Assembly: GCF_963921235.1 (NCBI RefSeq)
Contig: NC_086110.1
Location: forward strand, 9,238,001 to 9,302,000
Source: Mobula hypostoma
Lineage: Eukaryota
Direction: 5' to 3'
Length of the DNA stretch: 64,000 nucleotides
The notes under the pieces are model-generated. The model was not told the origin of the DNA, did no database searches, and saw only the letters and a list, made by a program, of their open reading frames with translations. Below, in pieces: positions 2,605 through 36,789 of this stretch. How positions within the stretch are numbered: position 1 is the first letter of the stretch; each line of letters starts with the position of its first letter. Position numbers and translations under genes: made by a program.

Positions 2605-2913
2605 CGAACACAGTTAACTGCGTGCCACTTCCATTGCCAACAGATTGGTCCTGTTGCAGCACTTGGCAATAGTAAGTGCCGATATCTGTGACGGTCGCAC
2701 CCAGCAGAGAAAATGTACCCCTGCCTTTGTTTACATTAAAGTGTTTCCTGGTGTCTGCTTCTATAAAATTCTTCTCGCCCTCTTTCCACCAATAAACATC
2801 ACGAATAGCTTGAGATATCGGAAATCTGCAAAACATGGAAACGTTTTCACCTCGGAAGATGTGCAGATCCTTCGGGAATTGATCCACGTTGCCTGAAGTT
2901 ACAGCAGCGACTA
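2605..2913 (-). CDS. Intact Ig V-set exon with germline-joined J-like G strand (VJ domain) of a non-rearranging receptor (gene 1; NKp30/SIRP-like architecture)
   Basis: Acceptor ttttctAG at 2915-2914, donor GTAAGA at 2604, 309 nt, phase 1/1. Translation VVAAVTSGNVDQFPKDLHIFRGENVSMFCRFPISQAIRDVYWWKEG...DIGTYYCQVLQQDQSVGNGSGTQLTVF has canonical Cys, Trp, DxGxYYC and GxGTxLxV; no stops. Confidence 0.92.
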
Positions 2914-3098
2914 CTAGAAAATAAACACGGCAGAGACAATAACCGAACATTGTGGACAAAGACAAAAAAGAAACACATAATATAGAATTAAAATTAAAGG
3001 CAGCGAGAAAAATTGAATATGTATTATAATTAAACTTGCAGTGCGCAATCAAGGTAGCATAATGAAAAACAGCCATCGATAATCAGAAGTAAGAATAC

Positions 3099-3153
3099 CT
3101 TGCCAAATTGTGCGCAGAAGAACTATGTGTCGAACTGTAATTTCCGCAGACAT
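3099..3153 (-). CDS. Leader (signal peptide) exon of gene 1
   Basis: ATG at 3153, MSAEITVRHIVLLRTIWQ+G, donor GTATTC at 3098; phase 1 splices in frame to the VJ exon to give ...IWQVVAAVTSG|NVDQ. Confidence 0.72.
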
Positions 3154-3381
3154 ACTCCAATATAAATGAACTGCAGTTTGGAATCAACGGTTCGGTGAAT
3201 AAATAAAACTTCATCATCAAATGTATAAAACATTCGATTGCCACAAAAGGGTATCACGTGATAGCATAATGAATTTCGAGTATAGTTCTGTTTTGGGCAG
3301 AGGGCGGTGTTAGGGCTGGATCTCCTCTCACCATGTTGTAGTGTGACACCATAATTTCCTTTGGGAAAGCACCTATAAAGG

Positions 3382-3411
3382 ACCTATCTATCTATCTATC
3401 TATCCATCCAT
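3382..3411. repeat. (CTAT)n/(CCAT)n microsatellite
   Basis: ctatctatctatctatctatccatccatc directly visible. Confidence 0.9.
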
Positions 3412-4429
3412 CTTGACTGTGTTTTATCCCAGTTACTTCCAACTACTTCAGAGGTAATAGTTTAAAAATCTACCTCATGTAATTAACTCTGCACTCGATT
3501 CTGAAGATAACCGTACAACTTAGTAGGAAGGTGTCAGTGAAGGTATTTCTTCATACATGAATAGGTATGGTCCGACTAGTCATACGGGGTACCTAGATGA
3601 CACTGAGAATCAATTTGGCATTGAATCACTTTGCTTCAGTTAATTATAAAGAAACAATAACACCTATCCAGTATTTAGTCTGTGGAACATACTTCTTTTT
3701 TATGACATCTGTAAACCGACTCAATAATAGCGATCATAGAAAATGTTCTTTTGTTCATTTGAATTGAGATTCTTAATTCTGGAAATCATAAATATAATTT
3801 ATTACCTTAATATTCAGACATGATCCGTATGGTAGCTGTTAAGATTGTGTTAGGTGCCGGATAATCTGATCAACTAGGTAAAAACGTTGAAATAGAAATA
3901 TTGTATCATTTCAATCAAAGTTAACTCTTTGAATTATTTTGTAATATGCACCACAAAGGAAAGTGGTGACTTCGATTCAACAAATGTATTGCAGAAATAA
4001 CTAATTCATACTTGAACGTTTTTGTCAAAATCCATTATTACACTTGTATGCTTCACAGTATTGTTTGAGGTAAAGCCCGATACAATTCAGTTCTACGGTT
4101 CACTCATATCATTTAATTGCTAAAGGAAAATTAGGTTGATATTTAAAGACACCTAAACAGTGCATCCAATGTTGTCTTGAACCCAAACTGCCTCTTCCCC
4201 TTCCATCTTCATTTTCGCATTATGAAAATTTTCCTTTTCCTTTTTTCTCTCTGTTTTTCAGTTACTTACCAGATAATTTCTGTCTCGTCCTACCCCCACT
4301 TTCCTCATGTGTAATTCTCCTTACTTCTCTTATGTTCTTGTAAGCTTGTGAACTCTTGTGAACTCCAGCTGCTTCCTTAGGAATACTGTGAGTATTCAAG
4401 ATGATAATTCCTATTGTCGATTTATTTCC

Positions 4430-5090
4430 TCCTGATAGTTTGTTGAGTCGGTGGTGAGGAAGGCAAATGCAATGTTAGTATTCATTTCAAGAGCTCCAGA
4501 ATAAAAGAGCAGGAATGTGATGCTGAGGCTTTATAAGGCACCTTGAGTATTGTGTACAGTTTTGGGCTCCTCATCTTAGAAAAGCTGTGCTGGCGCTAGA
4601 GTGGGTCCAGAGGAGGTTAACAAGGGTGATTCCAGGAATGAAAGGGTTATCATACGAGGAACGTATGGTTCTGGGTCTGTACTCGCTGCAATTTAGAAGG
4701 ATGACCGGGATCTCATTGAAACTTTTCGAATGCTGAAAGGCCTAGACAGAGTTGATGTTTCTCATGGCAGAAGAGTCTAGGACAAGAGGGAACAGCCTCA
4801 GGATAGAGAGGTGTCCATTCGAAACAGAGATGTGGAGAAATTTCTTTAAACAAAAGGTGGTGAATTTGTGGCATTTGTTACCACGAGCAGTTGCGGAGGC
4901 CAGATCGTTCGGTGTACTTAATGTAGAGATTGATAGATTCTTCAATGGACATGGCATCAAAGGTTAATAGAAGGAGGCCAGGAAATGGGGTTGAGGAGGA
5001 GAAGAAATGATCAGCCATAATTGAATGACGGAGCAGACTCGATGAGCCAAATGGCCTAATTCTGCTCCTATGTCATATGGTCTTATAACT
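4430..5090 (+). mobile_element. CR1-like LINE 3' fragment
   Basis: CR1 C-terminal peptide (RTRGNSLRI...EMWRNFFKQKVVNLW) and CR1 3' UTR ending ctaattctgctcctatgtc. Confidence 0.85.
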
Positions 5091-5689
5091 TCCAATGAAA
5101 CAATGCTTCTGAGTAAAACATACGGGCAATTCATACAGCGTGCAATATGTTTAAGCCTCAGTATCGGAGAACTGAGAATAATTTTTCTTCAGCAATTACC
5201 ATAAGGTTACTTATTTTGTTATTTGCGAAACGACAAAGAGCTTCAAACGTCCGCTCTATGGGACTGGTCTTTTGAAGGAAGGTAGAAAATAACTAACTAC
5301 CCTCTTCAGGTTCTGTTTTGGGAAAAATGATGAACCAATTAATATCTCATTTATGATCGCATACTAATGAGGACAATTAAACTGGTTTGAACATGTGTTA
5401 CATTCTGCAAGACGTAGAGTTGTTATGATAAATTAACACTGCAATAAATTATGATTTTGGATTCTGAGCACATATGAAAACATACACAAACAAGGCATAC
5501 AATATAGAGCTGCACAGAATGTTATTTCAGTCATCTGTGTGTAATCTAATTGTCCGTTGTTTATCATCTGGACTTTTGCACGTACTCCTCAAAGTGCAAG
5601 GATAATCCTTTTAGAGTTCTGTATTTTTTATACTGTGGATAATTTTGAATACATTTCTATGAATTAATCTTACAGTTTTTATCAATTTA

Positions 5690-5970
5690 GGGATACGGCG
5701 TAGTACCCGTTTCCAGCCCTTTGAGCAGCACCGCCCCAGCAATCCCCGATTTAATCCTCGCCTAATCACGGGACAATTTACAACGACATTTTACATGGAA
5801 CAGATCACCAATTTTTGGGTTGTGGGAGGAAGCCGGAGCACCCGATGAAAACCCACGAATTCTACGGGGAGGAACGCACAATCTCCCTGGAGATGACGTT
5901 GGAATTGAACTCTGAAGTCTGATGCCCTGAGGTGTAATAACATGGCGCTAACCACTACACTACCGTGGCC
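5690..5970 (-). mobile_element. tRNA-derived HE1-like V-SINE
   Basis: Reverse strand starts ggccacggtagtgtagtggttagcg (A-box-like), gttcaattcc (B-box-like), central gtgggtttt...gggtgctccggcttcctcccaca V-SINE core. Confidence 0.75.
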
Positions 5971-6015
5971 CCCATTAATTGACCCATTAGTTAACACGAT
6001 GCCATTGAAAGATTT

Positions 6016-6120
6016 TCAATTAGCCTGATCCTGCCTGGTCGATATGACCTGTGCAAACGAAGAACAAAGATAAGAAACAAAAAACGCCGTTGATAACAAA
6101 GCATACCAGATTTTAGGATG
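6016..6120 (-). pseudogene. Candidate terminal cytoplasmic exon of gene 2 with ITIM-like IWYALL
   Basis: Acceptor ttcattaaattcAG at 6122-6121; phase-0 HPKIWYALLSTAFFVSYLCSSFAQVISTRQDQAN*; YALLS...AQV resembles YATLS...GQV of the terminal exon at 34899-34967. T-rich, so could be coincidental. Confidence 0.3.
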
Positions 6121-8651: not shown

Positions 8652-8769
8652 CTCCATCACGTCAGAATAAAGAAAAACACAATTAAACATGCACAGAGTA
8701 TTGCACAATATATCGTTATGGGGCACAACAAGATAAAAACATTTTAAACAAGTTCAGATTCTGAGCCAC
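8652..8769 (-). pseudogene. Transmembrane exon (uncharged TM) of gene 2, two in-frame stops
   Basis: Acceptor tattatcttAG 8771-8770, donor GTATAT 8651, 118 nt phase 1/2: (G)GSESELV*NVFILLCPITIYCAILCACLIVFFFILT*WR; 28-residue hydrophobic run; phase matches the C1 exon end. Confidence 0.65.
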
Positions 8770-9939: not shown

Positions 9940-10470
9940 TGGATTGGTATCTAAGAAGAGATGTACTGGGCCTCAAGAAGGTCCAGAGGAGGCTCACAAA
10001 AATTGTTCTAGAAATAAAAAAGATTAGCGTTGGATGTCTCTGGGCCTGTAATCGATGGAATTCATAAGGAGGGGTGGGTGTAAGAGCTATCACTGAAACA
10101 TATGTGATACTGAAAAGCCAATGACGTACAGACGTTGAAAGGGGTTGCTACTTGTAGCAGCGTCTAGGATCCAAGAACACAAATGCAGATTAAAGGGACA
10201 TTCCTTGGAAACAGAAATAACGAGGAATTTCTTCCGGCAGGGGATGTTGAATCTGCAGAATTGCTGCCGTGGAAGGCTGCGGAGGCCAAGTTATTGGACG
10301 TACTTAAGGCAGACGTTGAGATATTGTTGATTGGTAAGGGAGTTAGAGGAAGCGAGTCGAAGATGGAAGAATGGGATTCCAAAATAACAACCTGGATTCA
10401 GTCACGGGGTAGAATGGATGAGCTAAATGTCCTAATTCTGCTTCAATTTCTCATGGTCTTGTGGGCACTA
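9940..10470 (+). mobile_element. CR1-like LINE 3' fragment
   Basis: ORFs 10145-10482 resemble the CR1 C-terminus (GHSLETEITRNFFRQG). Confidence 0.7.
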
Positions 10471-10739
10471 CAGAAATCTTGAAGCTTTATTAATCTGATA
10501 AATCCCTCGTGAAAGAGATTATATATTTTATTGAATATTTTATTGAATCAATAGTTAGTTCACAGAACTTTTTATTTTCTTTTGTAGATTTCTCAATATC
10601 GAATGTAACCAAAATTAATAACTTCTCTTTTCCTTTTGCGTTTGAGCATTGCTGTCCATAAATGTAATTAAAGTAATCAAACTTAAAAAAAATCATGTAT
10701 ATCTATAAATGGAATCCAAATGCAAAATCAAGCCGTTTA

Positions 10740-11160
10740 ATCCACTTCATCACAGGCAAAGCGCTCCTCATCACTGAGCACATCCACAAATGGAGTTGCT
10801 ACAAGGAATCATGGAATACTCCCACCGTTCATGCCATGCTCTCTCCTGCTGCTGCCATCAGGAAGAATGGCAGATCCTTCCAGCAGATCAACACCGGCAG
10901 ATTCAGGAACAGTTATCATCAGGCTCATATACCAGAGTGGATATATTCACTCACCTCAATTTCAAGCTAATACAAATGAAACCCCTTTGGTTTCCTTGGC
11001 CACGTAAGTCTAGGGAAGTCACACTCCCGTCCCGCCAAACCCATGCAACTGAGACGGCCCTCCCACCCAAACCATGGGTTTGCATGGATGCTATGTAATT
11101 TGCTACCCTGTTACAGCTCAGTGCCAAGAAATAACCAAAAGCACACTGCATACCATTATA
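10740..11160 (+). mobile_element. L2-like LINE 3' fragment
   Basis: HPHHPCHALFSLLPSGRRYRS-like degenerate sequence shared with other L2 3' copies in the window. Confidence 0.6.
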
Positions 11161-12199
11161 TTTATGAAACTTACTTAACTAAAGGAAAGAAAAGAAAGAA
11201 CAAAAACAAAAAGGGCCCATAATAATTATGTGCTCAAGTTGGAGCTCATCTTGCACTTCTCTGTCACTCGCGTGCTAGGCTGTAAAGAGAAAGCTATGGA
11301 TGAAGGTGAACAAAAGTGCAGACTAGGTCTAGAATTAATTCAGACCCAGACTGGAAATAATCAAGACAATACAAACGAAATGCCAAGGCGAAATCACAAA
11401 CAGCAGCACTAGAAATGGAATTCCTTCGATTGAGCAGTCAGTACTCAACACGAGGCCTTTAGGTACAGACTTTCCATGAAGAAATGTGGCAGGAAATAAT
11501 TGGCAGCCTGGTCTTAAAGAGATAGCGGCAGCTAACCATACTCCCGGGGAATTGAATTGCCAAGACTAGCATGTCTGCACTATTCAGTCAGCACCGTGAC
11601 AATTGTTTTATCATATTATGTACTAGATTTTGAAATTTATCATCCTTGTTCTCCGATCACTAACTTCCTTGCTCTGGATCTCTATAAATTAATTCAGCCC
11701 TACTACAACTGCGAGATATTAATCGGCTTGGAATTATGTGCACTTTACCGTACTGAAATCAGTCCCACCCTGTCTCAATTCCCTATCACACAGAAAAATT
11801 CAAGAAAACCCATCAGATTATTTCCTTTCACCTTTTCACCTTTTAAATCTTGCAGAACACTTCAGCTGAACATGGAATAACACTCACAGTAGCAAAGCAC
11901 TTTGATCCATGATGCCAAACCAAATTTATCTTCTTGGACCTGATCAATATTCTCCCATACCCTGCAAGTTGATGTTGGCGTCATACATCTCCTAATTGCC
12001 ACTATCGTGTCTGCCTCCACCACCTGCCCAGGCAGCAGACTTCTAAATACCTACCAATTTCTGCTTAAAATAAAGAAATTTGCCCCTCACCTTAAAGCTA
12101 TGCCCTGTAATATTTCCCATTTTTACCAAGGATAATGACCCTACATGTCTACACGTTACCTCCCTCAATGTTAGAAACTTCTGTCAGGTCTCTGCTCAA

Positions 12200-12900
12200 C
12201 TGTTGCAAAGAAAAGAGCAATACAAACAAAATTCTGGTGGAACACCAGCAGGTCTGGCAGTATCTATGGAAAAGAATAAACAGTCCTTGCTCTTTGCTTC
12301 ATCCCTCCCCCTCCAAGTTTTGCCTATCGTGTGGCGTTTCTCTCTCACCTACCCCCACCTTTCAAATCTACTCCTCAGAATTTTTTCTCCAGTCTTGCCA
12401 AAGGGTTTCGGCCCAAAACATCCACTGTACTTTTTCCCATACATGCTGCCTGCCTGATGAGTTCCTGTAGAATTTTGTGTGTGTCACCAAGGGAAGATAA
12501 CATACAGATAAAGAGAAGAGGTAAGGTGTTAGATTGGGGAATAGAAGAGGAGAGAATGGATAGGGAAATAATCACTGGAAGGAAAAATCGATTTCTATAC
12601 CATCAGGTTGGAATATGATATGTTGCTCCTCCATCCCCAGAGTGGCCTCGACATAGCAGAAGTGAAGGCTGTAGTTGTCAAAATTGCTAGGGGAAAAGGA
12701 ATAAGAGTAGTTGACAACCAGGAAATTCTGCTCTTTGTGGATGGAGTGGAGGTCCTCAGAAAAGTGGTTCCCCATTTTACACCACACAGAGAAAATGCTG
12801 GAGGAATTCAGCAGGCAGGCAGCATCTATGGATAAAAGTTGATGTTCGATGTACCAGGCCGAGACCATCAGGACTCAAATTTATGTTGGGCCCAACAATA
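12200..12900. repeat. Composite of Penelope-derived tail fragments in both orientations with degenerate hammerhead cores
   Basis: Inverted gctgcctg/cagcagg units at 12225-12270 and 12440-12480; degenerate agggtttcggcccaaaac at ~12400; Penelope 3' sequence 12590-12680. Confidence 0.6.
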
Positions 12901-13261
12901 TAGAGCAGGGTGCATCAAGAGCACTGGATATATTAGTCGAGGGAGATTGGTGGCGACAGATGAGTGGACAAGGGAATAACACAGAGAGTGATCCCTGCAG
13001 AAAGGGAGGGGGGAGGAGGGGGGAATATTTGCTTTGTGGTAAGATCCCAAGAAGATGGCGGACGTTGTAGGGAATGATGTGTTGTATATATATTTTAACC
13101 AATTATTTACTTACCTGTCTACTTATATATCTATTTAGTTATCTAAGTATGTGTGCATGCATGTGAGTACTTATTTATTTACTTAGGGATACAGCATGTA
13201 ATAGGCTCCTCCGGCCCGTTGAGCGTACTGCCAGCAACCCATGAATTTAACCCTAGCCTAA

Positions 13262-16162
13262 TTGCGGATCACTCAGCAAGTTTTTTACACTGATAGGTCT
13301 GCCAGAGAAATTCAATTTGACCAGGGCAGTAACTTTACTTTGGGAACATTCCAGGGGATAGTTAGAGAATTGGAAGCTAAACACGTGGTGTCATCTACAT
13401 ATCACACAGCGTCCAAGGGAGGCTTGGAACGGCGCATCTCAACTCTTAAGTCCATGATTAAAGCACATTGTTTGAGAAAGGGGAAAAATTGAGATGAGGG
13501 GGTTCCCCTACTCTTAATTATTGTTGGAGATTCGATTCAGAAGGCAGTGAAGGGTAGTTTGTTGGAACTTGTATTCAGTTACAGGGCAAAAGGACTTTTG
13601 ACCCTACTTAGAGAACTATAGTCTGATTTAGAAATATGTGTCAGTGTGCTTAATTCTGTTTTAAAATTCTGGGAAAGATTTAGTAGGCTTTGTGACTTTG
13701 CCAAGGAAAGTTTACAAAATGGTCGAGTCAAAATAAGACATTTGTTTGCTAGAATTGCAGCTGGGAGAATTGTTATGGAACAAAATGGAGTCGTGGAAGC
13801 TGATAAAGGAGTGGAAAAGCATGTTTACCCACTGAATCTAGACTCATCGAGATGTCAGAATTCCATTGTTTTGAAAAATATTACTGATAAGGTCCAGCAG
13901 TTGGACCCAAAACCACAAAAGCAAGTAAAAGGACTAACTGGCATTTTGAAATGGTGCACAGTTGTAGTGCATCACGTCATTATGAATTCAGCCCAGCCTA
14001 TGAAACGGCATCTTCACAGAGCGAACTTTGAGAAAAGTAAAATGGTTGAAGAAGAAATTAGAAATAGGAAAGAACAAGGAAAGAGAATGGATGACTGTAT
14101 TGATAGAGTGGGGAAGGCTAAATACCTTGTTAAGATTGACTTGTTAAAAGGATACTGTGGTGTTCCTTTAACAGAGAGGGCTAAAGAGATTTAGGCATTT
14201 GTGACACCATCTAGACTGTATGAGTACAATGTTTTACACTTCGGGATGAAAAATCCTCCAGGGACATTTCAAAGAATGATCAATTCTGTGATTGGAGGGT
14301 TAGAAAGCACAGGGGTTTATATCAAGGATTTAGTGGTCTGGAATGACACGTGGGAAGAGCATATTGCAGCTGTAGAAAAACAGTTTGACAGACTTTTCAA
14401 GGCCAATCTTACTGTGAACCTCGCTAGAAGTGAGTTTGGCCATGCCACAGTTACATATCTGGGTTATGTGGTAGGCCAGGGCCAAATGGCTCCTGTGCAG
14501 GCCAAGGTTCAAGCTGTTGCTGAAGTTCCTGTTCTGATGGGTAAGGAAGCTTTAAGAAGGTTTTTAGGAATGGTTAGGAATTATTGTAAGTTACGTAAGA
14601 ACTTTGCTGATATCGCTCTCCCCCTAACAAAACTCCTGGGGAACAGTGAAAGATTTGAATGGAATGACCTTTGCAAGGAGGCATTTGAATGTCTGGAAAC
14701 CATCCTGTGTTATCATCCTGTGCTCAAAGCACCTAATTTTTCCAAGCCATTTTCTATAGTAACAGACGCTAGTGATGAAACTGCTGGGGCAGTACTTTTA
14801 TAGAAAGGAGTGAATGACATTGAACATCCAGTTGCTTATTTATCAAAGAACTTTAATGTATACCAGAAAAATTATTCAGCTGTTGAAAAGGAATTACTAG
14901 CACTTATTCTGGCTTTACACCATTTTGAGGTCTCAGATCATAGGCCTCAAAATCTCTCTGTTGCCCAGACACTACTTGTGGTTTACATGGGTTATGATCC
15001 ATTGATGTTTCTAACCAAGATGAAGGGTAAGAATAGAAGATTGTTAAATTGGAGTTTGATATTGCAGGAATGTGACTTAAAAATCAAACATGTGAAAGAT
15101 ACTGACAATGTTATAGCTGATTTGGTATCCAGATGTTAAATTGGAAATTGCACACATTTTTACTCAGTCATCTGATGATTTTACTAGTGTTGTTTCAAAC
15201 TCTGTAATTTACATTTAGACAAAAAAAATCATCGTCAATTTTTTTTCCTCTGAGGAAGGGGAGCATGAGGGGATCCTGAAGTGCCCCTATTAACTGTGCT
15301 TTTGAAGAGAGGGAGAGGGAGAGGAAGAGGGAGATGAACAGTTGGACTGTCAGTTTAAGGCCCTGGAAGTAACTTTGGATTTCTACTGAGCTTGGAGTTG
15401 GAGGCAGCACCGAGCAGCTCGAAAGTTGCTATGGTGACCGAAGGCAGGTTGTTGATACGTCTTCAAGGACAGTTTGCCTGCTTGCATTTCTTCACAGACA
15501 AAGGAAGGAGGGATTATTTGAATGACAGGTGGCACCCAGTACGGTGAGATAAAATAGGAGGTCAGATGATACAGACCTCAGGCACACTGTTCTGGACACT
15601 GAATGAGCATTGTTGTGCCCGCAGGAAAAGTGGGTTTTGGAGGATCGATCAGGCAGATCGATCTGTCACTCTAACAGTGGAAAGGAGGAAAAGGCGTTGA
15701 CTGCTGGGGAGTTGTCCATGTGTCCACCCTCACCTGGGGGATAGCTCCACAACAGAAAACCGGTCCCCTTTGTTGAAGTCACAGTCAGTGACTTTTAAAG
15801 GATTTCGAAGGACAGCAAGAAGATCAATGGCATCAGCTTACCTGAAGACTCAAATCTCTCCCTCTCTCTCTCCATCACTACTCAACTAAAGACCACGAAC
15901 TGAACTGAATTTTACTCATCATCGTAAGACTGTATCTTTTTACCCCTAGACTGAAAGAAGCTTGGTTTTTCATACATATATTTCCACACTTACTGATATA
16001 CTTGCTTATATATATAATCATTGCTAACCTGTTTGATTTACCTACATTTATATCACTGTATTGCGTAGTTACTAATAAATATTATTAGTTTATAGCAATA
16101 CTGGACTCCAAAGTGTTTTCCATCTCTGCTGGTACTTTATTCCCATCACGGGATATGTGACA
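13262..16162 (+). mobile_element. Gmr1-like Ty3/Gypsy LTR retrotransposon (integrase upstream of RT-RNase H), 5'-truncated, with 3' LTR ~15264-16162
   Basis: Integrase motifs (IQFDQGSNF...YHTASKGGLERRISTLKSM) 13262-13500 precede RT (KIDLLKGY, FGMKNPPGTFQR, YIKDL) 14100-14500 and RNase H (TDASD.TAGAVL, YSAVEKELLAL) 14750-15139; purine tract 15252-15263; LTR ends TGTGACA. Confidence 0.85.
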
Positions 16163-16873
16163 CTTGTCATTGTCTTCTGTAGACTTGACTATTCTGATGC
16201 ATTACTGGACAGGTGCACTTTTTCTACACAGCAAATGGGCGAGAATTCAGAAAATATCGCACAGAAAATTTAGATCCAATTCCATTCATCCTGACGATTT
16301 TTTAACCAGTCTAGGAATTCAATAACTGTAATTTAAAGTCTCAATCCACTGCCTGAATCCATGACTCCCGATCTTCACATTTTTTCATTTCTATGATCTG
16401 TGCCTTCAGCAGTCCCAATTCAATACTTCTGCTGTACAACTAATTGCTATGCATTGAAGTCCTGGAATTGCCATCCTATTATTTTAAACTTAATTTCACA
16501 ATTATTTTAAAATTATTTTTCTTAAATCCCCACCCCACACCTACTTATTTCACAGCGTTTGATTATCTGCCAAATACTGAATTATGGGGCCCAGGCACAA
16601 GTTTTGCTTGCAAAAACTTTTAAGTGTGTTTGGATTTTGGTAGGTTACATGCTCTACACAAATACAATGTTTTAAGTCATCCCACCGGACTTCATTTGGC
16701 AACATTGGCTTCGGAATGATTACTCGCAATTCAATGCCTTGCACAGCGAACGTTGCACTGTGAATGCGGCTTACATATACATTTTCTCCCAGTGTGGGCA
16801 TCTATCCATCTGAATTTCTATTATAGGTTATATCTACTCAACCGATTCCAGCTGCAGCCACTTCCAGTCATAC

Positions 16874-17676
16874 CTTGTTCGACGACGTAGCTGACTTGGA
16901 GTACTGTGCTCAGTTCTGGTTGCCTCAGTACATGAAAGGATGTGGAAACCCATTGAAAGGGTGTAGAGGATACTTACAAGGATGTTGCCTGGATTGGGAG
17001 ACATGCCTTATGAGAATAGGTTGAGTGAACTTGGCCTTTTCTCCTTGGAGTGACGGAGGATGAGAGGTGACCTGATAGATGAAGATGATGAGAGGCATTG
17101 ATCGTGTGGATAGTCAGAGGCTTTTGCCCAGGGCTGAAATGGCTAGCATGACAGGGCACAGTTTTGTGGTGCTTGGAAGTAGGTACAGAGGAGATGTCAG
17201 GGGTAAGTTTTTTTTACGCAGAGAGTGGTGAGTGCGTGGAATAGGCTGCCAGCAACGGTAGTGGAGGCGGATACAGACTCTAGATAGGTACATGGAGCTC
17301 AGAAAAATAGAGGGCTATGGGTAACCCTAGGTAATTTCTAAGGTAAGGACAAGGTTGGCAGAGCTTTGTGGCCCGAAGAGCCTGCATTGTACTGCAGGTT
17401 TTCTATGTTTCTAGGTTTCCTATCAAGTCGGCACTGGGGAAGATACAATATACCAGGCAGATGTAAATGTCTTTACCCCAGGAAGGATGCACTACTTCCA
17501 AAAAACTGAGAGCCCCGAACAATCCATCCGCACTTCTGTTTATCATGGTTTGTATTCTGGTCAGAATTTCTACATTATTTCTCCACCAGAAGATTTCTAG
17601 TTTCTTTGGATAAAACGCAGCAGTTTTACACATTAGTTCAGGAGTTCCTTCAACTTCAGCAATGGATTCGGAGGAG
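16874..17676 (-). pseudogene. Ig C1-set exon of gene 2, frameshifted and split by a CR1 insertion
   Basis: Acceptor tatttcAG 17678-17677; (A)PPNPLLKL / EGTPELMCKTAAFYPKKLEIFWWRN...DGLFGALSFLEV...YICLV...GNL [CR1 16894-17412] SYVVEQ+G with donor GTATGA at 16873 (phase 1). CxxxxFYP, W and YxC are C1 hallmarks. Confidence 0.85.
16894..17412 (+). mobile_element. 5'-truncated CR1 LINE inserted antisense into the C1 exon
   Basis: Starts acttggagtactgtgctcagttctgg (HLEYCAQFW), ends ttctatgtttct tail; removal restores GGA AAC CTC AGC TAC (GNLSY). Confidence 0.88.
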
Positions 17677-18189
17677 CTGAAATATAAAGCATATATTGTA
17701 TGTTGATACAAGAGACTGCAGATGTTAGAAATCTGGAGTAATGCACAAAAGAGCTGGAGGACCTCAGCAGATGAGGCACACCTATGAAAGGATATGGACA
17801 ACTGAAGTTTACAGTCTTGACCCTTCATCATTTCCATTCATAGAAGCTGCCTGATCTACTTCATATTTTATGTTTCCTTGCAACCTAGGTAAACGTATTC
17901 CAGATTCATTTCTATGTTTACCTTGATGTGATTCTATATTGCATTAGTTAATCAAATTACAAAGAAGAGACAATCTTCAAATGCTGAAAATTCGAGCAAC
18001 ACACAAAATGCTGAAGGAAATCAGCAGGTCAGGAAGCACCTATGGAAAAAGTATAGTCGATGTTTCGGGCCGAAGTGTTCCTCCAGCATTTCATGTATGT
18101 TGCTTGCATTAGTTAATCATGCAATTATTTAAAAACTCAGTGTATCATTAATTCAGAAATGCTTTTACAGCAGATAACAAAATTGTAAG

Positions 18190-22245: not shown

Positions 22246-23522
22246 GTTTGAAATTCTTGTTTCGTTAATCACCAGTAAGTTGTCACTCACCCTCAGCAGT
22301 GCCATCTTTTGTCTCCTCCACACATCGTAAAACTTCTTCTATGGCATGTATGTATCCTATGCCTTCCAAACTGTTCCCAGAAACTCCATTCATTGCTGTT
22401 CTGCCATCATCGCTGCTTGTTCTCCCTTCCAATTAACTTGGGCCAGCTCCTCTCTCATGCCTCTGTAGTTGCCTTTTTTTCACTGTAATACTGATATATC
22501 TGATTTTAGCTTTTCCGTTGCAAACTGCAGTGTGAATTCTATCATATTATGATCATTGCTTCCTAACGATTCCTTTGAAATTGCATTTATTAGACAACAC
22601 CCAATCCAGAATTGTCTTTCCCTGGTGGGTTGAACCACAAGTTGCTGTACAAAGCCATTTCATACCATTCTACAAGTTCCTTCTCTTGGTATCCATCACC
22701 AACCTAACTTCCCCAATCGATATGCATTGCCTTTTGCAGCATTGCCCTTTTTACATGCCTCTTCTTTCTTTCGTTATAAGTTGTACCCCACATCCTGGCT
22801 ACTATTCAGAGGTCTGTATATGACTCCTATTGGGGTCTTTTCACTCTTGTAACTTCATCTACAAGGATTCTATATCTTCGGAGCCCATGCCACCTTCTTC
22901 TAGGGATGTCATTAGATTTTTTTGTATTGCCAGTTGAGCCACTCTGTCTACCTGTTTGTCTCCTTGATACAGTGTGTTTCCTTCATGTGTGTAAGCTCCC
23001 AACTATGATCAGTGATGCACATAATGTCGTACCTGACAGTTTTTAACTACACTACAAGATCAGCTACCATAGATGCTGCCTGTCTTGCTGAGTTGTGTAC
23101 ATTGTGTATCATTGTGTACATTCAAATATAACATATTCACCTTTGTTTCCATTTATCCTCCTTGTTACACTCCAATTCATCTCACTGACTGCAATTTTGC
23201 TCTATCATCTGGTTATCCTTCTTTTAAGTCTCAGTACACACTGCATTTACCTGCATACTACCAGTCCCATCCTCAGCCTTATCACTCCAATTCCTCTCTT
23301 TACTTTTGCATAAAGTGCTAGATGTAGGATTAAATCTAGGGAGGAGTCTCTGAACTTATTGTTGTTGTCCTTCCTTGGTGAGAAGAAATCTGGTCTTCTA
23401 CCACAGTTATCCTTTTCAAATAAAATACAGACATCTACTTCAACATCTTGTTTGCAAAGCAGCTCTAATTCTAGATCAAAGTTACTTTCTCAGCATTCAA
23501 CCTTTTTCTTAAGCCCGTTCAC

Positions 23523-23830
23523 TGAACAGAATGAACTGAGAGCCACCTCCAATCCCTAAAGAAAGTCCTTGATGTTTTGCATGACAGTAATATATGCCAG
23601 AGTCAGCAACATTCACATTCAGAAGGATAAATATCACTCTTCCCCTTTCTACATTAAATTGTTTTCTACCGTCTTGTTGTATTAATGTTTATTGTCATCC
23701 TCCCACCAATAAATATCAAAAGTATTCTGTAAAATGGGAATCTTGCAGAACATGGTAACTTCTGCACCTCCAGCGACTTCCAAGTCTTTTGGAATTTGAG
23801 AGACTCTACCCGAACTTACTTTCACAGCTA
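23523..23830 (-). pseudogene. Second germline-joined VJ exon (gene 2), 1-nt frameshift, mutated acceptor
   Basis: AVKVSSGRVSQIPKDLEVAGGAEVTMFCKIPILQNTFDIYWWEDDN / KTLIQQDGRKQFNVERGRVIFILLNVNVADSGIYYCHAKHQGLSLGIGGGSQFILF; about 46% identical to the 2605-2913 domain by manual alignment; one A missing in a run near 23690; acceptor CTAG>CTGG; weak donor GTGAAC. Confidence 0.88.
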
Positions 23831-24204
23831 CCAGAAATAAAGCAAAAAGGGGTGAGATTAGATATATATGAGAAAATGAAAAGAATAAATGGATTAAAAT
23901 ATAGAACAAAATGAACAATTTAGACTAAACAAGTTAAATCATAATTCATGAACGATACACACATCTTAGCGCACCATGCCAAACAAAAGCAAATAGTGCC
24001 ATATACCAAACGGCCGACATGTTAAAAAAGTAAGTTCTCCACTTGCTGTAAATTAAGTAATATCTTTCTAGGTTTGTCAAATCCATAGGATTTTGTAAGG
24101 AAATGTATCAACCATGTGATTATGTCGTTGAATAACACATCACTAATGGCCTGCTTGACTTTTCACGAGGGTACAAATCTCTCCAAGCAAACAACTACTT
24201 TCAT

Positions 24205-25550
24205 AGAAACAGAAATATAGAAAACCTACAGCAAAAGACAGGCCCTTCAGTCCACAAAGCTGTGCCGAACATGTCCTTACCTTAGAAATTACCTTGGATT
24301 ACCATAGCCCTCTATTTTTCTGAGTTCCATGTACCTGTCCAGGAGTCTCTGAAAAGACCCTATCGTATCCGCCTCCACCATCATTGCCTGCAGCCCATTC
24401 CATGCACTCACCACTCTCTGCGTAAAAAAACTTACCCCTAACATCTCCTCTGTACCTACTTCCAAGCACCTTAAAACTGTGCCCTCTCGTGCTAACCATT
24501 TCAGCCCTGGGATAAAGCCTTTGACTATCCACACGATCAATGCCTCTCATCATCTTATACTCCTCTATCAGCTCACCTCTCATCCTCTGTTGCTTCAAGG
24601 AGGAAAGGCCGAGTTCACTCAACCTATTCTCATAAGGCATGCTCCCCAATCCAGGTAACATCCTTGTAAATATCCTTTGCACCCTTTCTATGGTTTCCAC
24701 TTCCTTCCTGTAGTGAGACGACCAGAACTGAGCACAGTACTCCAAGTGGTGTCTGACCAGGGTCCTACATAGCTGCAGCATTACCTCTTGCTCCTAAATT
24801 CAATTCCACAATTGATGAAGGCCAATGCACCATATGCCTTCTTAACCCAAGAGTTAAACTGCGCAGCTGCTTTGAGCGTCCTATGAACTCAGACACCAAG
24901 ATCCCTCCGATCCTCCATACTGCCAAGAGTCTGACCAATACAATATTTTGCCGTCATATTTGACCTACCAAAATGAACCACCTCACATTTATCTGGATTG
25001 ACCTCCATCTGCCACTTCTCATCCCAGTTTTGCATCCTATCAATGTCCCGTTGTAACCTCTGACAGCCTTTCACACTATCCATAACACCCCCAATCTTTG
25101 TGTCATCAGCAAATTTACTAACTCATCCTCCACTTCCTCATCTAGATCATTTATAAAAATCACGAAAAGTAGGGGTCCTAGAACAGATCCCTGAGGCACA
25201 ATACTGGTCACCGACCTCCATGCAGAATATGACCCGTCTACAACCACTCTTTGCCTTCTGTGGGCAAGCCACTTCTGGATCCACAAAGCAAGGTCTCCTT
25301 GGATTCCATGCCTCCTTACTTTCTCAATAAGTCTTTCATGGGATACCTTGTCAACTGCCTTGCTGAAATCCATATACACTACATCTACTGCTCTACTTTC
25401 ATATTATGCCTCTTCAAATGTTCATAAATCCTGCCTCTCACAATCTTCTCCATCAACGTACCAACCATTGAAGTAAGACTTACTGGTCTATAATAGTCTA
25501 CTTTCATACCCTTTATCGATATGTTCCCCTCCTTCTGATTCTGATTATAA
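24205..25550 (-). mobile_element. CR1-like LINE (RT through 3' tail)
   Basis: [41 protein letters not shown] motifs; tail ttctatatttctgtttct. Confidence 0.9.
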
Positions 25551-28500: not shown

Positions 28501-28544
28501 CTAAATTGCACGTATTTTTAGATTTTAATAATTATGTTAACAAT

Positions 28545-31500
28545 ATAGAAACATAGAAACCTACAGCACAATACAGGCCCTTTGGCACACAAAGAAGTGC
28601 CGAACATGTCCTTCCCTTAGAACTTACCTAGGGTTACGCCTAGTCCTCTATTTTTCTAAGCTCCATGTACCTATCCAAGAGTCTCTTATTAGATGCTATC
28701 GTATCCGTCTCCACTACCGTCGCTGGCAGCCCATTCCACGTACTCACCACTCGCTGCGTAAAAAACGTACCACTGACATCTCCTCTGTACCTACTTCCAA
28801 GCACCTTAAAATTGTGCTCTCTCGTGCTAGCCATTTTAGCCCTGGGATAAAGCCTCTAACTATCCACACAATCAATGCCTCTCATCAACTAATAAACCTC
28901 TGTCAGGTCACTTCTCATTCTCCATCGCTCGGAGGCGAAGAGGCTGAGTTCACACAAACTATTCTCATAAGGCATGCTCCCCAATCCAGGCAACAGCCTT
29001 GTGAATCTCCTCTGCACCATTTCTATGGCTTCCACGTCCTTCTTGTAGCGAGGCGACCAGAACTGAGCACAGTACTCCAGTGAATTACATCCGCAACTGT
29101 CTAATCCTCTGGAACCTCTCTCGTCCCCACTGATGATGCAAAGATCATCGCCAGAGGCTCAACATTCTCCTCCCTAGCCTCCCACAGTAGCCTGGGGTAC
29201 ATCTCGTCCAGTGCCGGTGACTTATCCAACATGATGCTTTCCAAAACTCCAGCACATCCACTTTGTTAATATCTACATGCTCAAGCTTTTCTGCCCTTTT
29301 CTGTAGTAAGTACTGAAGGAAAGTATTCATTGAATTCTTCTGCTATCTCCTACGGTTCCATACACACTTTTCCACTGTCACACTTGATTGACCCTATACT
29401 CTCAGGTTTTCTGCTCTTGCTCTTCACATACCTGTAGAATGCCTTGGGGTTTTCCTTAATCCTGTCTGCCAAGGCCATCTCATGGCCCCTTCATCGCTCT
29501 CCTAATTTCTCTTTTGAGCTCCTTCCTGCTAGCCTTATAATCTTCTAGTTCTCTATCATTACCTAGTTCTTTGAACCTTTCATAAGCTCTCCTTTTCTTC
29601 TTGACTAGATTTACAACATTCTTTGTACAGTACGGTTCCTGTACCCTACCATTTTTTCCCTGTCTCATTGAACTGTACCTATGCAGAACCCCACACAAAT
29701 ATCCCCAGAACATTTGCCTCATTTCCTCCATACATTTCCCTTAGAACATCTAATTTATGCTTCCAGGTTCCTACCTGATAGCCTCATATTTCCCCTTACT
29801 CCAATTAAGCACTTTCTAACTTGTCTGTTCCTATCCCTCTCCAATGCTATGGTAAAGGAGTCACTATCTCCAATGCTATGGTAAAGGAGTCACTATCTCC
29901 AATGCTATGGTAAAAGATCACTATCTCCAAAATGCTCTCCCACTGAGATAACTGACACCTGACTAGGTTCATCTCCCAATACCAGATCAAGTACAGCCTC
30001 TCCTCTTGTAGGCTTATCTACATACTGTGTCAAAAAACCTTCCCCAACACACCAAACACACTCCATCCTATCTACACCGCTCACTCTAGGCAGGAAGATA
30101 CCAATTGATATTTCAGAAATTAAAATCTCCCACCACAACAACCATCTTATCATTACATCTTTCCAGAAAATGTCTCCCTATCTGTTCCTCGATGTTCCTT
30201 TTACTATTGGGTGGTCTATAAAAAACACCCAATAGAGCTATTGATCCCTTCCTTTTCCTAACTTCCACCCACAGAGACTCAGTGGACCATCGCTCCATGA
30301 CTTCCTCCTTTTCTGCAGCGTGACATTGTCTCTGATCAGCAGTACCACGCCCCCACCTCTTTTGCCTCCTTCCCTGTCCTTTCTGAATCATCTAATGCCT
30401 GGCACTCTAAGTAGCCATTCCTGCCCCTGAGCCATCCAAGTCTCTGTAATGGCCACAACACCATAGTTCCAAGTACTAATCAATGCTCTAAACTCATCGG
30501 CTTTGTTCATAATATTCCTTGCATTAAAATAGACACATCTCAAACCATCAGTCTAAACGTGTTCCTTCTCTATCACCTGCCTATCCTCGCTCTCGCACTG
30601 TCTCCAAGCTTTCTCTATTTGTGAGCCAACCGCCTCTTCAGTGTGTTTCCCACTCCCCAGCGATTGTAGTTTAAATTTCCCCCAATAGCCTTTGTAAACC
30701 TCCCCACCAGGGTATCGGTCCCTCTGGGATTCAAGTGCAACTCCTCCTTTTTGTACAGGTTGTGCCTGCCCCAAAAGAGGCCCCAATGTTCCAGAAATCT
30801 GAATCCCTGCCCCCACCTCCACGCATTTATCCTCCACCTCCTTCTATTCCTATACTCACTGTCACGTGGCACAGGCAGTATTCCTGAGACTACTATCTTT
30901 GTGGTCCTGCTTCTCAACTTCTTTCCTAATTCCCTGTAGTCTGTTTTCAGGACCTCTTCCCTTTTCCTACCTATATCGTTGGTACCAATATGTACCACAA
31001 CCTTTGGCTGTTCTTCTTCCCACTTCAGGATATCATGGACGCGATAAGCAACATCCCGGATCTTGGCACCTGGGAGGCAAACTGCCATCCGTATTTCTTT
31101 CCTGTGTTCACAGAATCGCCTGTCTGACTCCCTGTCACTGCTGCCGTCCTCCTCCTTTCCCTACGGTTCTGCGTCACAGTGCCAGACTCTGTGCCGGAGT
31201 CTTCCTGCAGGTAGGCCGTCCCCCCAAACAGTACTCAAGCAGGTGTACATTTTGTTAAGGGGGAGAGCCACAGGGGTACTCTCTAGCCTCTGACTCCTGC
31301 CCTTCCCTCTCCTGACTGTTACCCACTTACCTGTCTCCCGAGGCCCTAGTGTGACCACCTGCCTATAGCTCCTATCTATCACCTCCTCACTCTCCCTGAC
31401 CAGACGAAGGTCATCGAGCTGCATCTCCAGTTCCTTAACGTGGTCCCTAAGCAGCTGCAGCTCGACACACCTGGCGCAGGTTGTGGCCGTCCGAGAGGCT

Positions 31501-33011: not shown

Positions 33012-33576
33012 ATACACTCTGTGGATTCCTTAAAAGTACCTGCATGTACCTAATAGGATTGCCACTGAGTGTATGTTTGTGCTCTTCTGCTGCTGTATCG
33101 CTTCCTCTTCAAGGTTCAACGTGTTACGCGATTGGAGATGCTTTTCTACACACCGCTGTTGTAACACATGGTTATTTGAAATTACTGACGCCTTCCAATC
33201 AGCTTGGACCCGTCTGGCCATTCTCCTTTGACCTTTCTCATTAACAAAGGTGCTTTCGCCCACAGAACTGCCGCTCCCTGGATATTTTTTGTTTTGATTT
33301 TTGCACCATTTTTTGTGAACTCTAGAGACTGTTGTGCTGAAAATACTAGGAGATCAGCAATTTTTGCGATAGTCAAACCACTCCGCCTCGCACCAGCAAT
33401 CAAGTCACGATCAAAGTCACTCAGATCACATCTCTGCTCCATTCTGATGTTCGGTCTGAACAGCAACTGAAGCTCTTGACTTTATGTATTGAGCTGCTGC
33501 CACATGATTAGCTGATTAGATACTTGTATTAACGAGAACGAATACAGGTGTACATAATAAAGTGGCTACTGGATGT
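33012..33576 (-). mobile_element. Non-autonomous Tc1/mariner element
   Basis: ORF 33182-33466 RCDLSDFDRDLIAGARRSGLTIAKIADLLVFS is a Tc1 HTH N-terminus; degenerate TIRs related to tacactcagtggccactttattaggtacacc at both ends. Confidence 0.8.
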
Positions 33577-33639
33577 AAATACTGTATTTGAATAGACAGG
33601 GACTGATTAAGGGGAGTATTAGGAACATGGCTTTGTGCA

Positions 33640-34690
33640 TGGTCGGTGGCATCTGACCAATCATAGAGTTGTTCTAAGAGGTTACCAGGAAAGTTGATGA
33701 ACAAAAGGCAGTGGATGTTGTCTACATGGAATTCAGCATGCCTTTTGACAAGGTCCTGCATGGGAGGTAGGTCAGAAAGTTTCAGTTGCTCGACATTCAA
33801 GATAGGGTAGTAAATTGGCTTAGACATTGGCTTCATACGAGAAGCCAGAGAGTGATTGCAGATGGTTGCTTATCCAACTAAAGGTAACTGGTGAGGTACC
33901 ACGGGAATCGGTATTGGGCCTGTTATTGTCTGTCTTGTTTATTGTTTGTATTGTTTATTGGATGATAATGTAATAAATTTGTGGATGACATTAAAAGCAG
34001 TGAACAGCAAGGAACGGTATTATCAAAACTTGCAGTAGATGTCGACTGACTGGAAGAATGGGCTGAAAATGGCAGATGGAATTTAATGCATACAGGTGTG
34101 AGATTTACACACTGGGTGGAGAAACCAGGGTAGAACTTTCTTAGTGAATGGTAGGGCACTGAGGAGTGCTATGGAAGAGAGGGGTCTGGGAATACAGATT
34201 TAAAATTCATTGAAAGTGGCATCACAGATACATAAGGTTGCAAAGTGTGTTTCTGGCATATTGACCTTCATAAATCAAAATATTGAGTACAGAAATTCAA
34301 ATGTTTTGATGAAGTGGTAAAGGATGGATGGTGAGACATAATCTGGAGTATTATGTGCAGATAGATAGGGTAAATGCAAGCAGTTCTTTCCTTTAAGATT
34401 GGGTGATATGAGAATGAGAGCTTATGTGTTAAGGGTGTAGGATAAAATGTTTAATGGCAACATAAGGAGGAACTTCTTCACTCAAGTGGTGAGAGTGTGG
34501 AGCGAGCTGCCAGCAGAAATGATGAATGCAGATTCGATTTCAACATTTAAGACAAGTTTGTATAAGTACATGGATGGGAGAGGTATGGAGGGCTTGGTCT
34601 ACTTGCAGGATAATGGAACTGGGCATAATAATAGTTCGGCACGGACTAGATGGGCCAAAGTCTCTTTCTGGGCTGTAGTTCTATATGATG
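33640..34690 (+). mobile_element. CR1-like LINE, decayed RT to 3' tail
   Basis: VDEQKAVDVVYMEFSMPFDKV; IRRNFFTQVVRVWSELP; tail ttctatatga. Confidence 0.8.
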
Positions 34691-34898
34691 CCATGATTCT
34701 AAATTTTGCATATGGTATTATTCTGGTCTCCACTTTTATGATGGCAGACTTTTAAAAAAAATATATCCTAACCAGTGGGAATTTTACCTGTGTTTTTAAC
34801 AAGATTTATTACATTTCCTTAGTTTATGTTTTTGTTTAAATCGAAGTTAGGATCAAGCGCCATTGGATTGCCAGTGACCGCAAAATCCATGCTGGTAT

Positions 34899-34967
34899 CT
34901 ATGGCACCTGTCCTAAGGAAGGCTTGGATAGTGTAGCGTATTCCTTCTGAACATTGGAATCTGAGGG
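34899..34967 (-). CDS. Terminal cytoplasmic exon of gene 4 (YATL in phase 0)
   Basis: Acceptor gtatgttcAG 34969-34968; PSDSNVQKEYATLSKPSLGQVP*; AATAAA on minus at 34810-34805. Confidence 0.55.
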   Translation of the reverse strand, partial: PSDSNVQKEYATLSKPSLGQVP

Positions 34968-35511
34968 CTGAACATACAGATCTTTATACATGTATTAAGA
35001 ACATAAATAACATAAATCATCAGAGTCCTTTTGGCAAAGCATGTGAGTCTAGAACTAGAGAACACAAGTGTAATGTGAGAGTAGCGACACTTAAATTAAA
35101 TCTGAGAGGTTTGTTTCTCAAAGTATGGTGATTACCTGGAACTTGTTGTCAGAGGCAATGGTAGAGGGAGACACATTTGCAGTCTTTGCAATTCATTTGG
35201 GGCCAAGTTCAGTCAAATGGGATTAGTATGGATAAACATCATGTTCAACAACCTTTCTGTGCTGTACAATTCTTTGATACTACAATAACATAAAAGATGC
35301 TGGAAATACTGTACTCTGTAGGTCAGATAATATTGTGCAAAAAGAAACTGAAGGGCTATCATCTTTCATCAGGTCATCTACCTCTATCTCTAAATACGCT
35401 TCAGTCGGCACACATGTTCTCTGACGCGTAGAGGATTTTCAGAATTTCCTATGTTTTTCTTGACTTGCAACATATGCAGCATCTTACTCGCCTCCTCCTC
35501 CTAGTACTTAC

Positions 35512-35542
35512 TGTCATTGCTAAACTGATGTTCCGATATTGG
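35512..35542 (-). CDS. 31-nt cytoplasmic exon of gene 4
   Basis: Acceptor cacttcagatttcAG, donor GTAAGT; phase 2/0 reading xQYRNISLAMT is in frame with the terminal exon. Confidence 0.55.
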
Positions 35543-36209
35543 CTGAAATCTGAAGTGCATGAACTTATCTAAGCATTTGTAAATGCACTAAAACGAGTTG
35601 GTTGAAGAGGAAACTCCCAAGGCCTGAAATTTACTATTTCTTTCTATTATTAGTACATACTCCTTACAGCCTGCTTTCTACTCATAATGTCTAAACGATC
35701 CAGGAGATGAAGGGCTTGATGAGGGGTATTGGCCCGAAACGTTGACTCTTTATTTACCTCTATGGATGCTGCCTGACACGCTGAGATCCTCCAGCATTTC
35801 ATATGTGCTCCCCATCCAGAGGAACAGATTACCTCGAATACTCAATGCACTCATTTGTGTTAATAGATATTTACGTTGAATTTTGTCAACTTTTATTGGA
35901 AGTCTGTATTGAGAGCACGTAAAACTGTAAAATTCATAGGTCCAGGAATATCAATGAGTTCATAGGTCCAGGAATTTGAAATACGCAATGGAACATGAGC
36001 ACATTTTTTCCTGCATTTATTGTCCTGATATGAAGTACTGTATCACAAATTGACTAATCCAACCCATTCTACTGTTATGATATAAATGTGACAAAATGTC
36101 TAAAGGCACTCATGTTTCTCTCAGGTTAAAGTAGCCGCATTCTTTAGTCAATCAAAGACAGCATAAAAGAGCTATCAAATCATAATCTGGATTTTATAAT
36201 GACTCTTAC

Positions 36210-36222
36210 TTGATAGATTGAA
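36210..36222 (-). CDS. 13-nt micro-exon candidate of gene 4
   Basis: cttaatcttgcctAG|TTCAATCTATCAA|GTAAGA; good acceptor and donor. Confidence 0.4.
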
Positions 36223-36575
36223 CTAGGCAAGATTAAGGAAGTTAAAAGTGGTATTTAACCTGTATCAAGATAATTCCTTTTAGTATCTTATTGAATTATG
36301 AGGATCAGGATTTCAAACACATCGCTTAAGTTACATCTTAGCAATTCATTTAAACGCCGAACAGGCTGCAGCCTTTAACACAGAATATTTCCATGACGTC
36401 ATCAGCAGATTTGCGGCGATATTCTCGTCACCTTGTGTCTTTATTGGATCGAACTACAAATGAGTTTGTAGTAAATCATTAGTTTAAAAAAAAGTTGAAA
36501 AAATGCGCATTTGAGCAATAGTAATTTCGAATTATAAACAGAAACCTAAAATATTTGGCACCAGAAGACGCATTC

Positions 36576-36789
36576 CTCCATCAGAATGGATCAAAATAGA
36601 ATGTATTTAAAATGAAACCTAATAAACCATAAAGGAGACAAACTCGCAGACACGGACAAATGCACTTTCATACATTTAAACATTGATGTGAATCACAGAA
36701 ACACGTACAGCATCACCTTTGATGTACACAGCAGTTTAACATTATCAAATGCAATCGATGGGGTTTTGAAATAATATAAAGTGTTGTAT
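36576..36789 (-). pseudogene. TM-coding exon of gene 4 (Arg-containing TM), stops and mutated donor
   Basis: Acceptor ttgtttaactgtttAG at 36791-36790; 214 nt phase 1/2; CLRVCLLYGLLGFILNTFYF at 36652-36593; ends TGA TGG AG like the 8652 TM exon but the donor is GA instead of GT. Confidence 0.5.

Follow-up and report, generated by a model that had tools for sequence, protein, structure and literature searches.

An expressed leader-VJ gene and a pseudogene beside OGFOD1 in Mobula hypostoma point to a large chondrichthyan family of non-rearranging, paired-receptor-like VJ-C1 proteins

Chains that couple a germline VJ domain to a C1-set domain are the hypothetical starting point of immunoglobulins (Ig) and T-cell receptors (TCRs), and UrIg, UrIg2, NKp30 and PRARP are the candidates for such a beginning. 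PRARP of bony vertebrates, in the account of Fu et al. 2019 (J Immunol), reportedly consists of non-rearranging VJ-C chains with a transmembrane (TM) segment, proposed to be relics of antigen-receptor precursors. UrIg and UrIg2 are non-rearranging VJ-C1 genes of elasmobranchs, located in the major histocompatibility complex (MHC) or an antigen-receptor complex (PMC12227049). UrIg2 has nine C domains in the nurse shark and eleven in the epaulette shark model, and its crystallised N-terminal part, V-C1-C2-C3, is a disulfide-linked dimer (PMC12227049). Here, we analyze 64,000 nucleotides from Mobula hypostoma (contig NC_086110.1, positions 9,238,001 to 9,302,000, forward strand), hereafter the window, in whose own numbering all coordinates are given. 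Its contribution is the expressed 5' half of a VJ gene (gene A), one related pseudogene (pseudogene B) and the linkage of both to OGFOD1. In our best explanation, which we hold to be very likely, the window covers the edge, on the side of OGFOD1, of a tandem cluster formed by a multigene family of cartilaginous fish; the members of this family are type I membrane receptors with a split leader, a germline V(J) domain, one C1 domain, a TM segment, and a cytoplasmic tail that is present or not.

A profile hidden Markov model (HMM) built from eight relatives and run over all 3181 stop-free segments of both strands recovered only five family pieces in the window, all on the minus strand: the leader of gene A, its V exon, two halves of the V exon of B, and the C1 exon of B (~17.4-17.7 kb). 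The VJ exon of gene A is 309 bp long and is separated from the leader by an intron of 185 bp (Table 1). It matches the family HMM with E 1e-51 and Pfam V-set with E 2.4e-8, I-set being a weaker match. The leader (3100-3153) scores E 0.15, a weak value expected for 18 residues, and is 83% identical to the leader of P0001, the closest relative of gene A. The original prediction of an intact leader plus VJ exon at 2605-3153 on the minus strand is borne out by the splice sites, the V-set match and the ends of RNA contigs described below. V and J are contiguous in a single exon, and YYC leads unbroken into a J-like G strand with the motif VGNGSGTQLTVF. No heptamer of a recombination signal sequence (RSS; CACAGTG/CACTGTG) is present, and the RNA is collinear with the germline, in agreement with the proposal that V and J are fused in one exon without an RSS. 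The V domain is compact, with 53 residues from Cys to Cys, and its AlphaFold model has no C'' strand; the nearest solved V-type sequences in a PDB search are Robo I-set domains, shark V-NAR and TCR V-alpha. With its YWW, DSGxYYC and GNGSGTxLTV motifs, split leader and phase-1 single V(J) exon, gene A has the hallmarks by which we recognize the family. Positions 1-2604 of the window contain neither a C1 nor a TM exon for gene A. Because the gene for P0001 spans 5.3 kb, these exons are expected about 2 kb past the window edge, and gene A reads as a live, spliced family member whose 3' exons lie beyond the window start.

Four RNA runs from the organism of the window contain the VJ exon of gene A at 100% identity. 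RNA contigs begin exactly at 2605 in three of the runs (X5, X9 and X11), those of X5 branch at 3099, and one X9 contig (record 29) covers 2605-2915 and then continues with 29 letters that depart from the intron. In X5 the depth falls from 48 over the VJ exon to 25 and 12.5 over the introns on either side. Over 2605-2915, the V-J junction included, there are 0 differences between RNA contigs and germline. In the four runs that express gene A, RNA depth is zero over 34800-36799, except for a repeat at 35600-35799 in one run, and the runs are therefore not merely contaminated with genomic DNA. Gene A reads as transcribed and spliced at the predicted borders.

Several side observations concern the ends of the gene A exons and their surroundings. 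The VJ exon starts at a tandem NAGNAG acceptor (ctagtag, 2908-2917); the upstream AG (QVVAAV) suits the X9 contig, and the QVAAV of the annotated P0001 is what the downstream AG would give. At its other end the VJ frame stays open for 20 codons beyond the donor, to a stop at 2543 (2543-2604), and unspliced contigs run across this donor in X5 (1816-2634), X11 (2504-2634) and X12 (2585-2888). P0094, a 183 aa protein matched in our exhaustive protein search, ends in a comparable intron read-through. A soluble V-only isoform of gene A, produced by intron retention, is possible. X5 also covers all of 130-6000 at depth 10-25, DNA upstream of the gene A ATG included; it is possible that gene A is part of a longer transcription unit, or that a promoter or 5' exon lies further upstream.

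P0001, from Hemitrygon akajei, is 95% identical to gene A over the VJ exon and is its sister in our tree (support 100/99), which makes gene A a recent paralogue or allele of it; the best Mobula proteins reach ~55-57% over the same exon. It is a protein of 247 aa, named NCR3LG1-like by NCBI, with leader, VJ, C1, an uncharged GCAxGG TM and a 7-residue tail. An exhaustive profile search of proteins gave 3105 matches at E<1e-3 and 119 at E<1e-30, and the top matches, giant multi-Ig proteins aside, are V-C1 proteins of 200-450 aa. Named matches come from Chondrichthyes in 29 of 29 cases sampled from this search and in 38 of 39 from a word-indexed search, the sole outsider being one gecko protein. 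The named relatives range from a chimaera (Callorhinchus) through about ten sharks (among them Heterodontus, Heptranchias, Scyliorhinus, Mustelus, Chiloscyllium, Hemiscyllium, Stegostoma, Carcharodon and Cetorhinus) to six batoids (in Narcine, Pristis, Mobula, Hypanus and Hemitrygon). Every relative examined in detail has a single C1 domain. In the sequences read there is no Cys between C1 and TM, and a Cys within the TM (GCAxGG) is conserved in most members. The exons of a Callorhinchus member run leader, VJ, C1, TM and several small cytoplasmic exons, with VJ again as one exon. In Callorhinchus milii (a piece of MU249845.1, at positions 1-441 and 10001-17750 of that piece) two members lie in tandem 10 kb apart, the second upstream of the mapped one, and each small cytoplasmic exon of the mapped member has one tyrosine motif. 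The idea of a TCR-shaped, non-rearranging innate receptor family in cartilaginous fish is thus supported at the level of the family, by the leader-VJ-C1-TM structure of the relatives.

The names that NCBI gives to these relatives come from nine unrelated families overall (examples are SIRP-alpha-like, SIRP-beta-1-like, NCR3LG1-like, Ig lambda-like, TCR beta-like, tapasin-related-like, MHC class II-like, PD-L1-like and CD276), and close paralogues switch names across families. The original prediction had suspected that such genes are lumped as SIRP-like or NCR3-like; the first label is indeed common, but in place of the second we find NCR3LG1-like, the ligand of NCR3. A search of the literature within reach found no description of the family. 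The family is real and large and, as far as that literature goes, undescribed.

The relatives carry three kinds of signalling module. Many have tails of 70-150 residues with an immunoreceptor tyrosine-based inhibitory motif (ITIM, LTYAAL type) and an immunoreceptor tyrosine-based switch motif (ITSM, TEYAxL type). In a second group the tail is short and an Arg sits in the TM's outer half; one version of this type (xRLxLGFLVILxLxGIIVDH) is kept in several sharks. A third type, exemplified by P0001, combines a short tail with the uncharged GCAxGG TM. Two Scyliorhinus proteins have ectodomains that are 93% identical and different TM exons, and an Arg-TM form of Hypanus shares 89% ectodomain identity with an ITIM/ITSM form of Mobula. 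Because near-identical ectodomains carry either an ITIM/ITSM tail or an Arg-TM with a short tail, the family can be read as a paired inhibitory/activating one, as had been suggested from the window. In the tree the signalling types form no clades of their own but are scattered through species-specific expansions (7 labels, 32 changes). Judged from sequence, the pattern is that of paired receptors evolving through birth and death, and live gene A beside dead B is a local example of the birth-and-death process that the original prediction had envisaged. We infer that the V(J) domain would bind ligand, with the C1 domain acting as a stalk. In the long-tailed forms the ITIM/ITSM tyrosines would recruit SHP-1/SHP-2 and thereby inhibit, and in the short-tailed forms the TM Arg would pair with an adaptor bearing an ITAM (immunoreceptor tyrosine-based activation motif) and activate. 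By analogy, this would be the same logic as in SIRP-alpha/beta, KIR or NITR pairs.

Pseudogene B retains recognizable family exons that are broken at several points. Its V exon is 49-51% identical to that of gene A over the aligned halves, which match the family HMM with E 2e-16 and 5.6e-14. The exon starts in the proper phase; a 1-nt deletion near 23690 then shifts the frame, and the original frame meets a TAA. Its J motif is degenerate (GIGGGSQFILF). The second VJ paralog predicted at ~23.5-23.8 kb is therefore present as a V exon, but frameshifted rather than intact. A C1-set exon had likewise been proposed at 16874-17676, and a C1 domain is there, 59% identical to Mobula and Hemitrygon relatives by tblastn, but it is split by a long interspersed nuclear element (LINE) and out of phase. 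Once the LINE insert is removed, the 803-bp span becomes an exon of ~270 bp, and its end matches the family end SY(I/V)(Q/L/I)EQ|G of P0020, P0179 and P0184. Translated in phase 1 from the 17676 acceptor, the exon gives PPNPL (PPTPL in the family) and then a stop, with the remaining domain in the next frame; the family frame starts at 17675, one nucleotide off the phase of the V donor. Where a conserved Ser-His should follow the second Cys, B has Tyr-Cys, and the His is lost. Further copies of the inserted 534-bp LINE fragment lie in the window at 24206-24747 and 28546-29079 (82-85%) and at 54662-54912 (74%). A degenerate leader for B (MCVSF..., near 23963) was not accepted, as it has no phase-1 donor.

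The RNA record, which had been named as a check on the cluster, distinguishes the two genes: gene A is expressed with spliced borders, and sequence words of the B V exon, present in DNA runs, score 0.00 in every listed RNA run, including X5 and X11, in which gene A is expressed. The tree places B at the end of a long branch (0.62), as sister to a batoid clade (support 99/93). B is an old, silent pseudogene from a different batoid subclade than gene A. In the DNA runs of a second, related organism, 76% of 31-mers are held in common with the gene A region (2450-3250) and 52% with the B V exon (23510-23840), and this lower sharing fits a faster decay of the pseudogene.

The remaining exons of the predicted cluster could not be upheld. 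V, C1 and TM exons had been thought to follow one another in compatible phases, but the C1 of B is one nucleotide off its V donor and the supposed TM exon at 8652-8769 contains a stop in phase 1. This segment has a 28-residue hydrophobic run, the phase-1 stop being an in-frame TAA, and stops occur in all three frames; against a TM profile made from 59 segments of relatives it scores -1.1 and ranks ~830 of 3181 open reading frame (ORF) segments. For the supposed TM plus tyrosine-tail set at 34899-36789, the values against the tail profile (made from 40 segments of relatives; E 35-82) and the TM profile (E 53) are noise, and the RNA depth there is zero, as noted above. No segment of the window rises above noise with either profile, tblastn with 172 relatives gave no match at 8652-8769 or 34899-36789, and the family HMM recovered neither ORF from the window. 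By eye, the 8.7-kb ORF (xFILLC...) and the 34.9-kb ORF (LYVQP...KEYATL) do look family-like, and both are rejected on the evidence of the profiles, the family HMM and tblastn. They may be decayed relics.

Table 1. Features of the window and what identifies them
Feature	Position	Strand	Evidence or state
Gene A leader exon	3099-3153	minus	ATG at 3153; 18 codons + 1 nt; phase-1 GT donor at 3097-98
Gene A VJ exon	2605-2913	minus	AG at 2914-15, GT at 2603-04, phase 1 at both ends, stop-free
Claimed TM exon	8652-8769	minus	hydrophobic ORF between AG and GT; unsupported as family exon
Pseudogene B C1 exon, last 19 nt	16874-16892	minus	SYVVEQ + G, then GT donor 16872-73
LINE 3' fragment, 5'-truncated, 534 bp	16893-17426		inserted in B C1 exon
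Pseudogene B C1-set exon, 5' part	17427-17676	minus	Pfam C1-set E 1.9e-8; family HMM E 5e-21
Pseudogene B V exon	~23524-23827	minus	two reading frames; family HMM matches both halves
Claimed TM + tyrosine-tail exon set	34899-36789	minus	unsupported
OGFOD1 coding exon	52487-52633	plus	phmmer E 4.9e-17 to human OGFOD1, PDB 4NHX residues 73-121

The neighbourhood of OGFOD1, which had been part of the original prediction, is confirmed by a coding exon that corresponds to residues 24-72 of an ORF at 52418-52687 on the plus strand. A scan for motifs of the OGFOD1 catalytic region came back empty and Pfam was silent on this exon; it was the PDB sequence search that identified it. The cluster (minus strand) and OGFOD1 (plus strand) are transcribed divergently. 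The window is AT-rich and contains LINE reverse transcriptases and pol sequences with RNase H/integrase of the long terminal repeat (LTR) type, as seen with Pfam. An LTR-retrotransposon-like element occupies 57600-62100 on the minus strand. Its pol ORF (58090-59562) has RNase H and integrase domains, a gag-like ORF (60685-61455) and protease/reverse transcriptase-like ORFs are visible by eye only, and near-identical repeats flank it at ~57585-57845 and 61563-61800. Short interspersed repeats at 4400-5200 and 37600-38700 reach RNA contig depths of ~76,000 and ~6,000, respectively, with many variant joints; they are highly transcribed, high-copy elements, either short interspersed nuclear elements or LINE tails.

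Comparison with solved structures bears on what the family is. In a PDB sequence search with the whole ectodomain, UrIg2 (9DMX) came out on top (E 5e-12), next to Ig lambda chains (~6e-12). The C1 domain alone found UrIg2 (E 3.5e-12, summed over three domains), MHC class I alpha-3 and beta-2-microglobulin, C-mu and MHC class II beta-2, and by its sequence it is a generic C1-set domain. Foldseek returned antibody light chains only (E ~1e-12), with modest TM-scores due to the elbow angle, and did not discriminate among families; the ESM Atlas gave generic V-C1 clusters only.

Two readings would assign the family to known molecules. That it consists of cartilaginous-fish SIRP orthologues with one C1 domain instead of two is, in our judgment, unlikely. 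Many relatives are automatically named SIRP-alpha-like or SIRP-beta-1-like, but the names of close paralogues switch among the nine families mentioned. In the PDB sequence search SIRP-alpha (2WNG) falls within the best 30 matches (E 2.7e-10), but its similarity does not exceed that of Ig lambda or UrIg2. A VJ-like V domain, C1-set domains and the logic of an ITIM tail versus a basic TM residue are common to both; the single C1 of all relatives examined in detail stands apart from the SIRP layout, and the only neighbour that we see is OGFOD1. Human SIRPs are located at 20p13 and OGFOD1 at 16q. We consider it very unlikely that the proteins are ligands rather than receptors, that is, B7-family molecules of the B7H6 (NCR3LG1) type, which target cells would present to NKp30-like receptors. 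Such a role would account for the name NCR3LG1-like that NCBI attaches to P0001 and many others, for the order V, C1, TM, and for the short tails of P0001 and P0002, and the copy numbers of B7H6 and NKp30 reportedly co-vary from sharks to mammals (Flajnik 2012). It sits poorly, however, with the near-identical ectodomains that carry an ITIM/ITSM tail or an Arg-TM, a signature of receptors, and with a G strand bearing a J-type motif. Moreover, neither B7-H6 nor NKp30 was among the 60 best PDB matches of the whole protein or the V domain, and PD-L1 gave weak partial matches.

The window could also hold nothing functional, gene A being a relic leader and V exon within read-through RNA and the rest only decaying copies, which we judge to be just as improbable as the ligand reading. 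It is true that the C1 and TM exons of gene A are absent from 1-2604, that X5 spans introns and upstream DNA, and that retroelement ORFs were confirmed at six sites of the window, with many more reverse transcriptase-like ORFs visible. On the other hand, the gene A exons are intact and have canonical splice sites, exon depth is about twice that of the introns, in several runs contigs end precisely at the two exon borders, and the missing exons are expected outside the window if gene A resembles P0001. Several points nevertheless weigh against our preferred reading of a live gene at the edge of a paired-receptor cluster. Gene A appears in the window as leader and VJ only, so that its C1, TM and tail exons, its completeness and its signalling class are not readable there, and any signalling class ascribed to its 3' end is a prediction. 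The RNA evidence consists of assembled contigs that carry no label of strand or tissue; the coverage of introns and upstream DNA in X5, at depth 10-25, indicates that part of the RNA is unspliced or read-through. The 29 extra letters in X9 record 29 have the length expected of the spliced leader and are probably that. The 1-nt deletion in B is backed only by DNA runs that are possibly the assembly's own data. Finally, the proposed signalling of family members rests on motifs, and motifs alone are no proof.

If the family is a paired-receptor family as we propose, it would supply candidate natural killer (NK) or myeloid-type paired receptors in cartilaginous fish, about which, to our knowledge, little has been reported beyond the NKp30 family, and a new outgroup for trees of V and C1 domains. 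It has a one-V, one-C1, TM layout, is found in dozens of copies across a range that runs from chimaera to rays, and shows an apparent inhibitory and activating pairing. Automatic names such as SIRP-alpha-like, NCR3LG1-like, Ig lambda-like, MHC II-like and PD-L1-like are unreliable for its genes. A bolder thought, which we regard as quite unlikely, is that the family is a third surviving pre-RAG, non-rearranging VJ-C1 lineage beside UrIg and UrIg2, one that would have kept the single-C1, membrane-anchored layout and expanded into a paired innate system in the chondrichthyan ancestor. If this were true, it would be the closest living model of an antigen-receptor chain and its signalling before the RAG transposon split the V exon.

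Set against the described systems, the family shares features with each of them. UrIg and UrIg2 are likewise genes of cartilaginous fish with a split leader, a single-exon VJ and C1-type domains; they have several C domains, whereas the family has one C1 and a TM, paired signalling modules, dozens of copies and OGFOD1 as a neighbour. PRARP is reportedly alike in architecture, and is described as a gene pair of bony vertebrates in contrast to a large paired family. Ig light chains and TCRs have the same V(J) plus one C1 (the TCR also a TM) and provide the best fold matches and strong sequence matches. The family differs from them in having no RSS, in the germline joining of V and J, in mRNA that equals the germline, and in its ITIM/ITSM tails. 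NKp30 (NCR3) and the teleost NITRs resemble it in having germline VJ-type V domains, in occurring as activating and as inhibitory forms, and in forming multigene clusters in lower vertebrates. NKp30, however, has no C domain, whereas the family has a C1-set domain, and NITRs, known from teleosts only, combine V with an I-type domain. NKp30 chains were absent from the 60 best PDB matches for the whole protein or V domain. SIRPs have in common with the family a V domain that does not rearrange and has a J-like G strand, C1-set domains, and ITIM-tailed and basic-TM members with similar ectodomains; they have two C1 domains where the family has one, and the family V domain is the compact form described above for gene A, in a range restricted to Chondrichthyes in the searches made. 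Thus, the family is a new and unnamed variant of the paired receptors of the Ig superfamily with a germline VJ domain. Its architecture looks like that of a non-rearranging TCR or light chain, and by analogy it would be functionally most like the SIRP-alpha/beta or NITR pairs.

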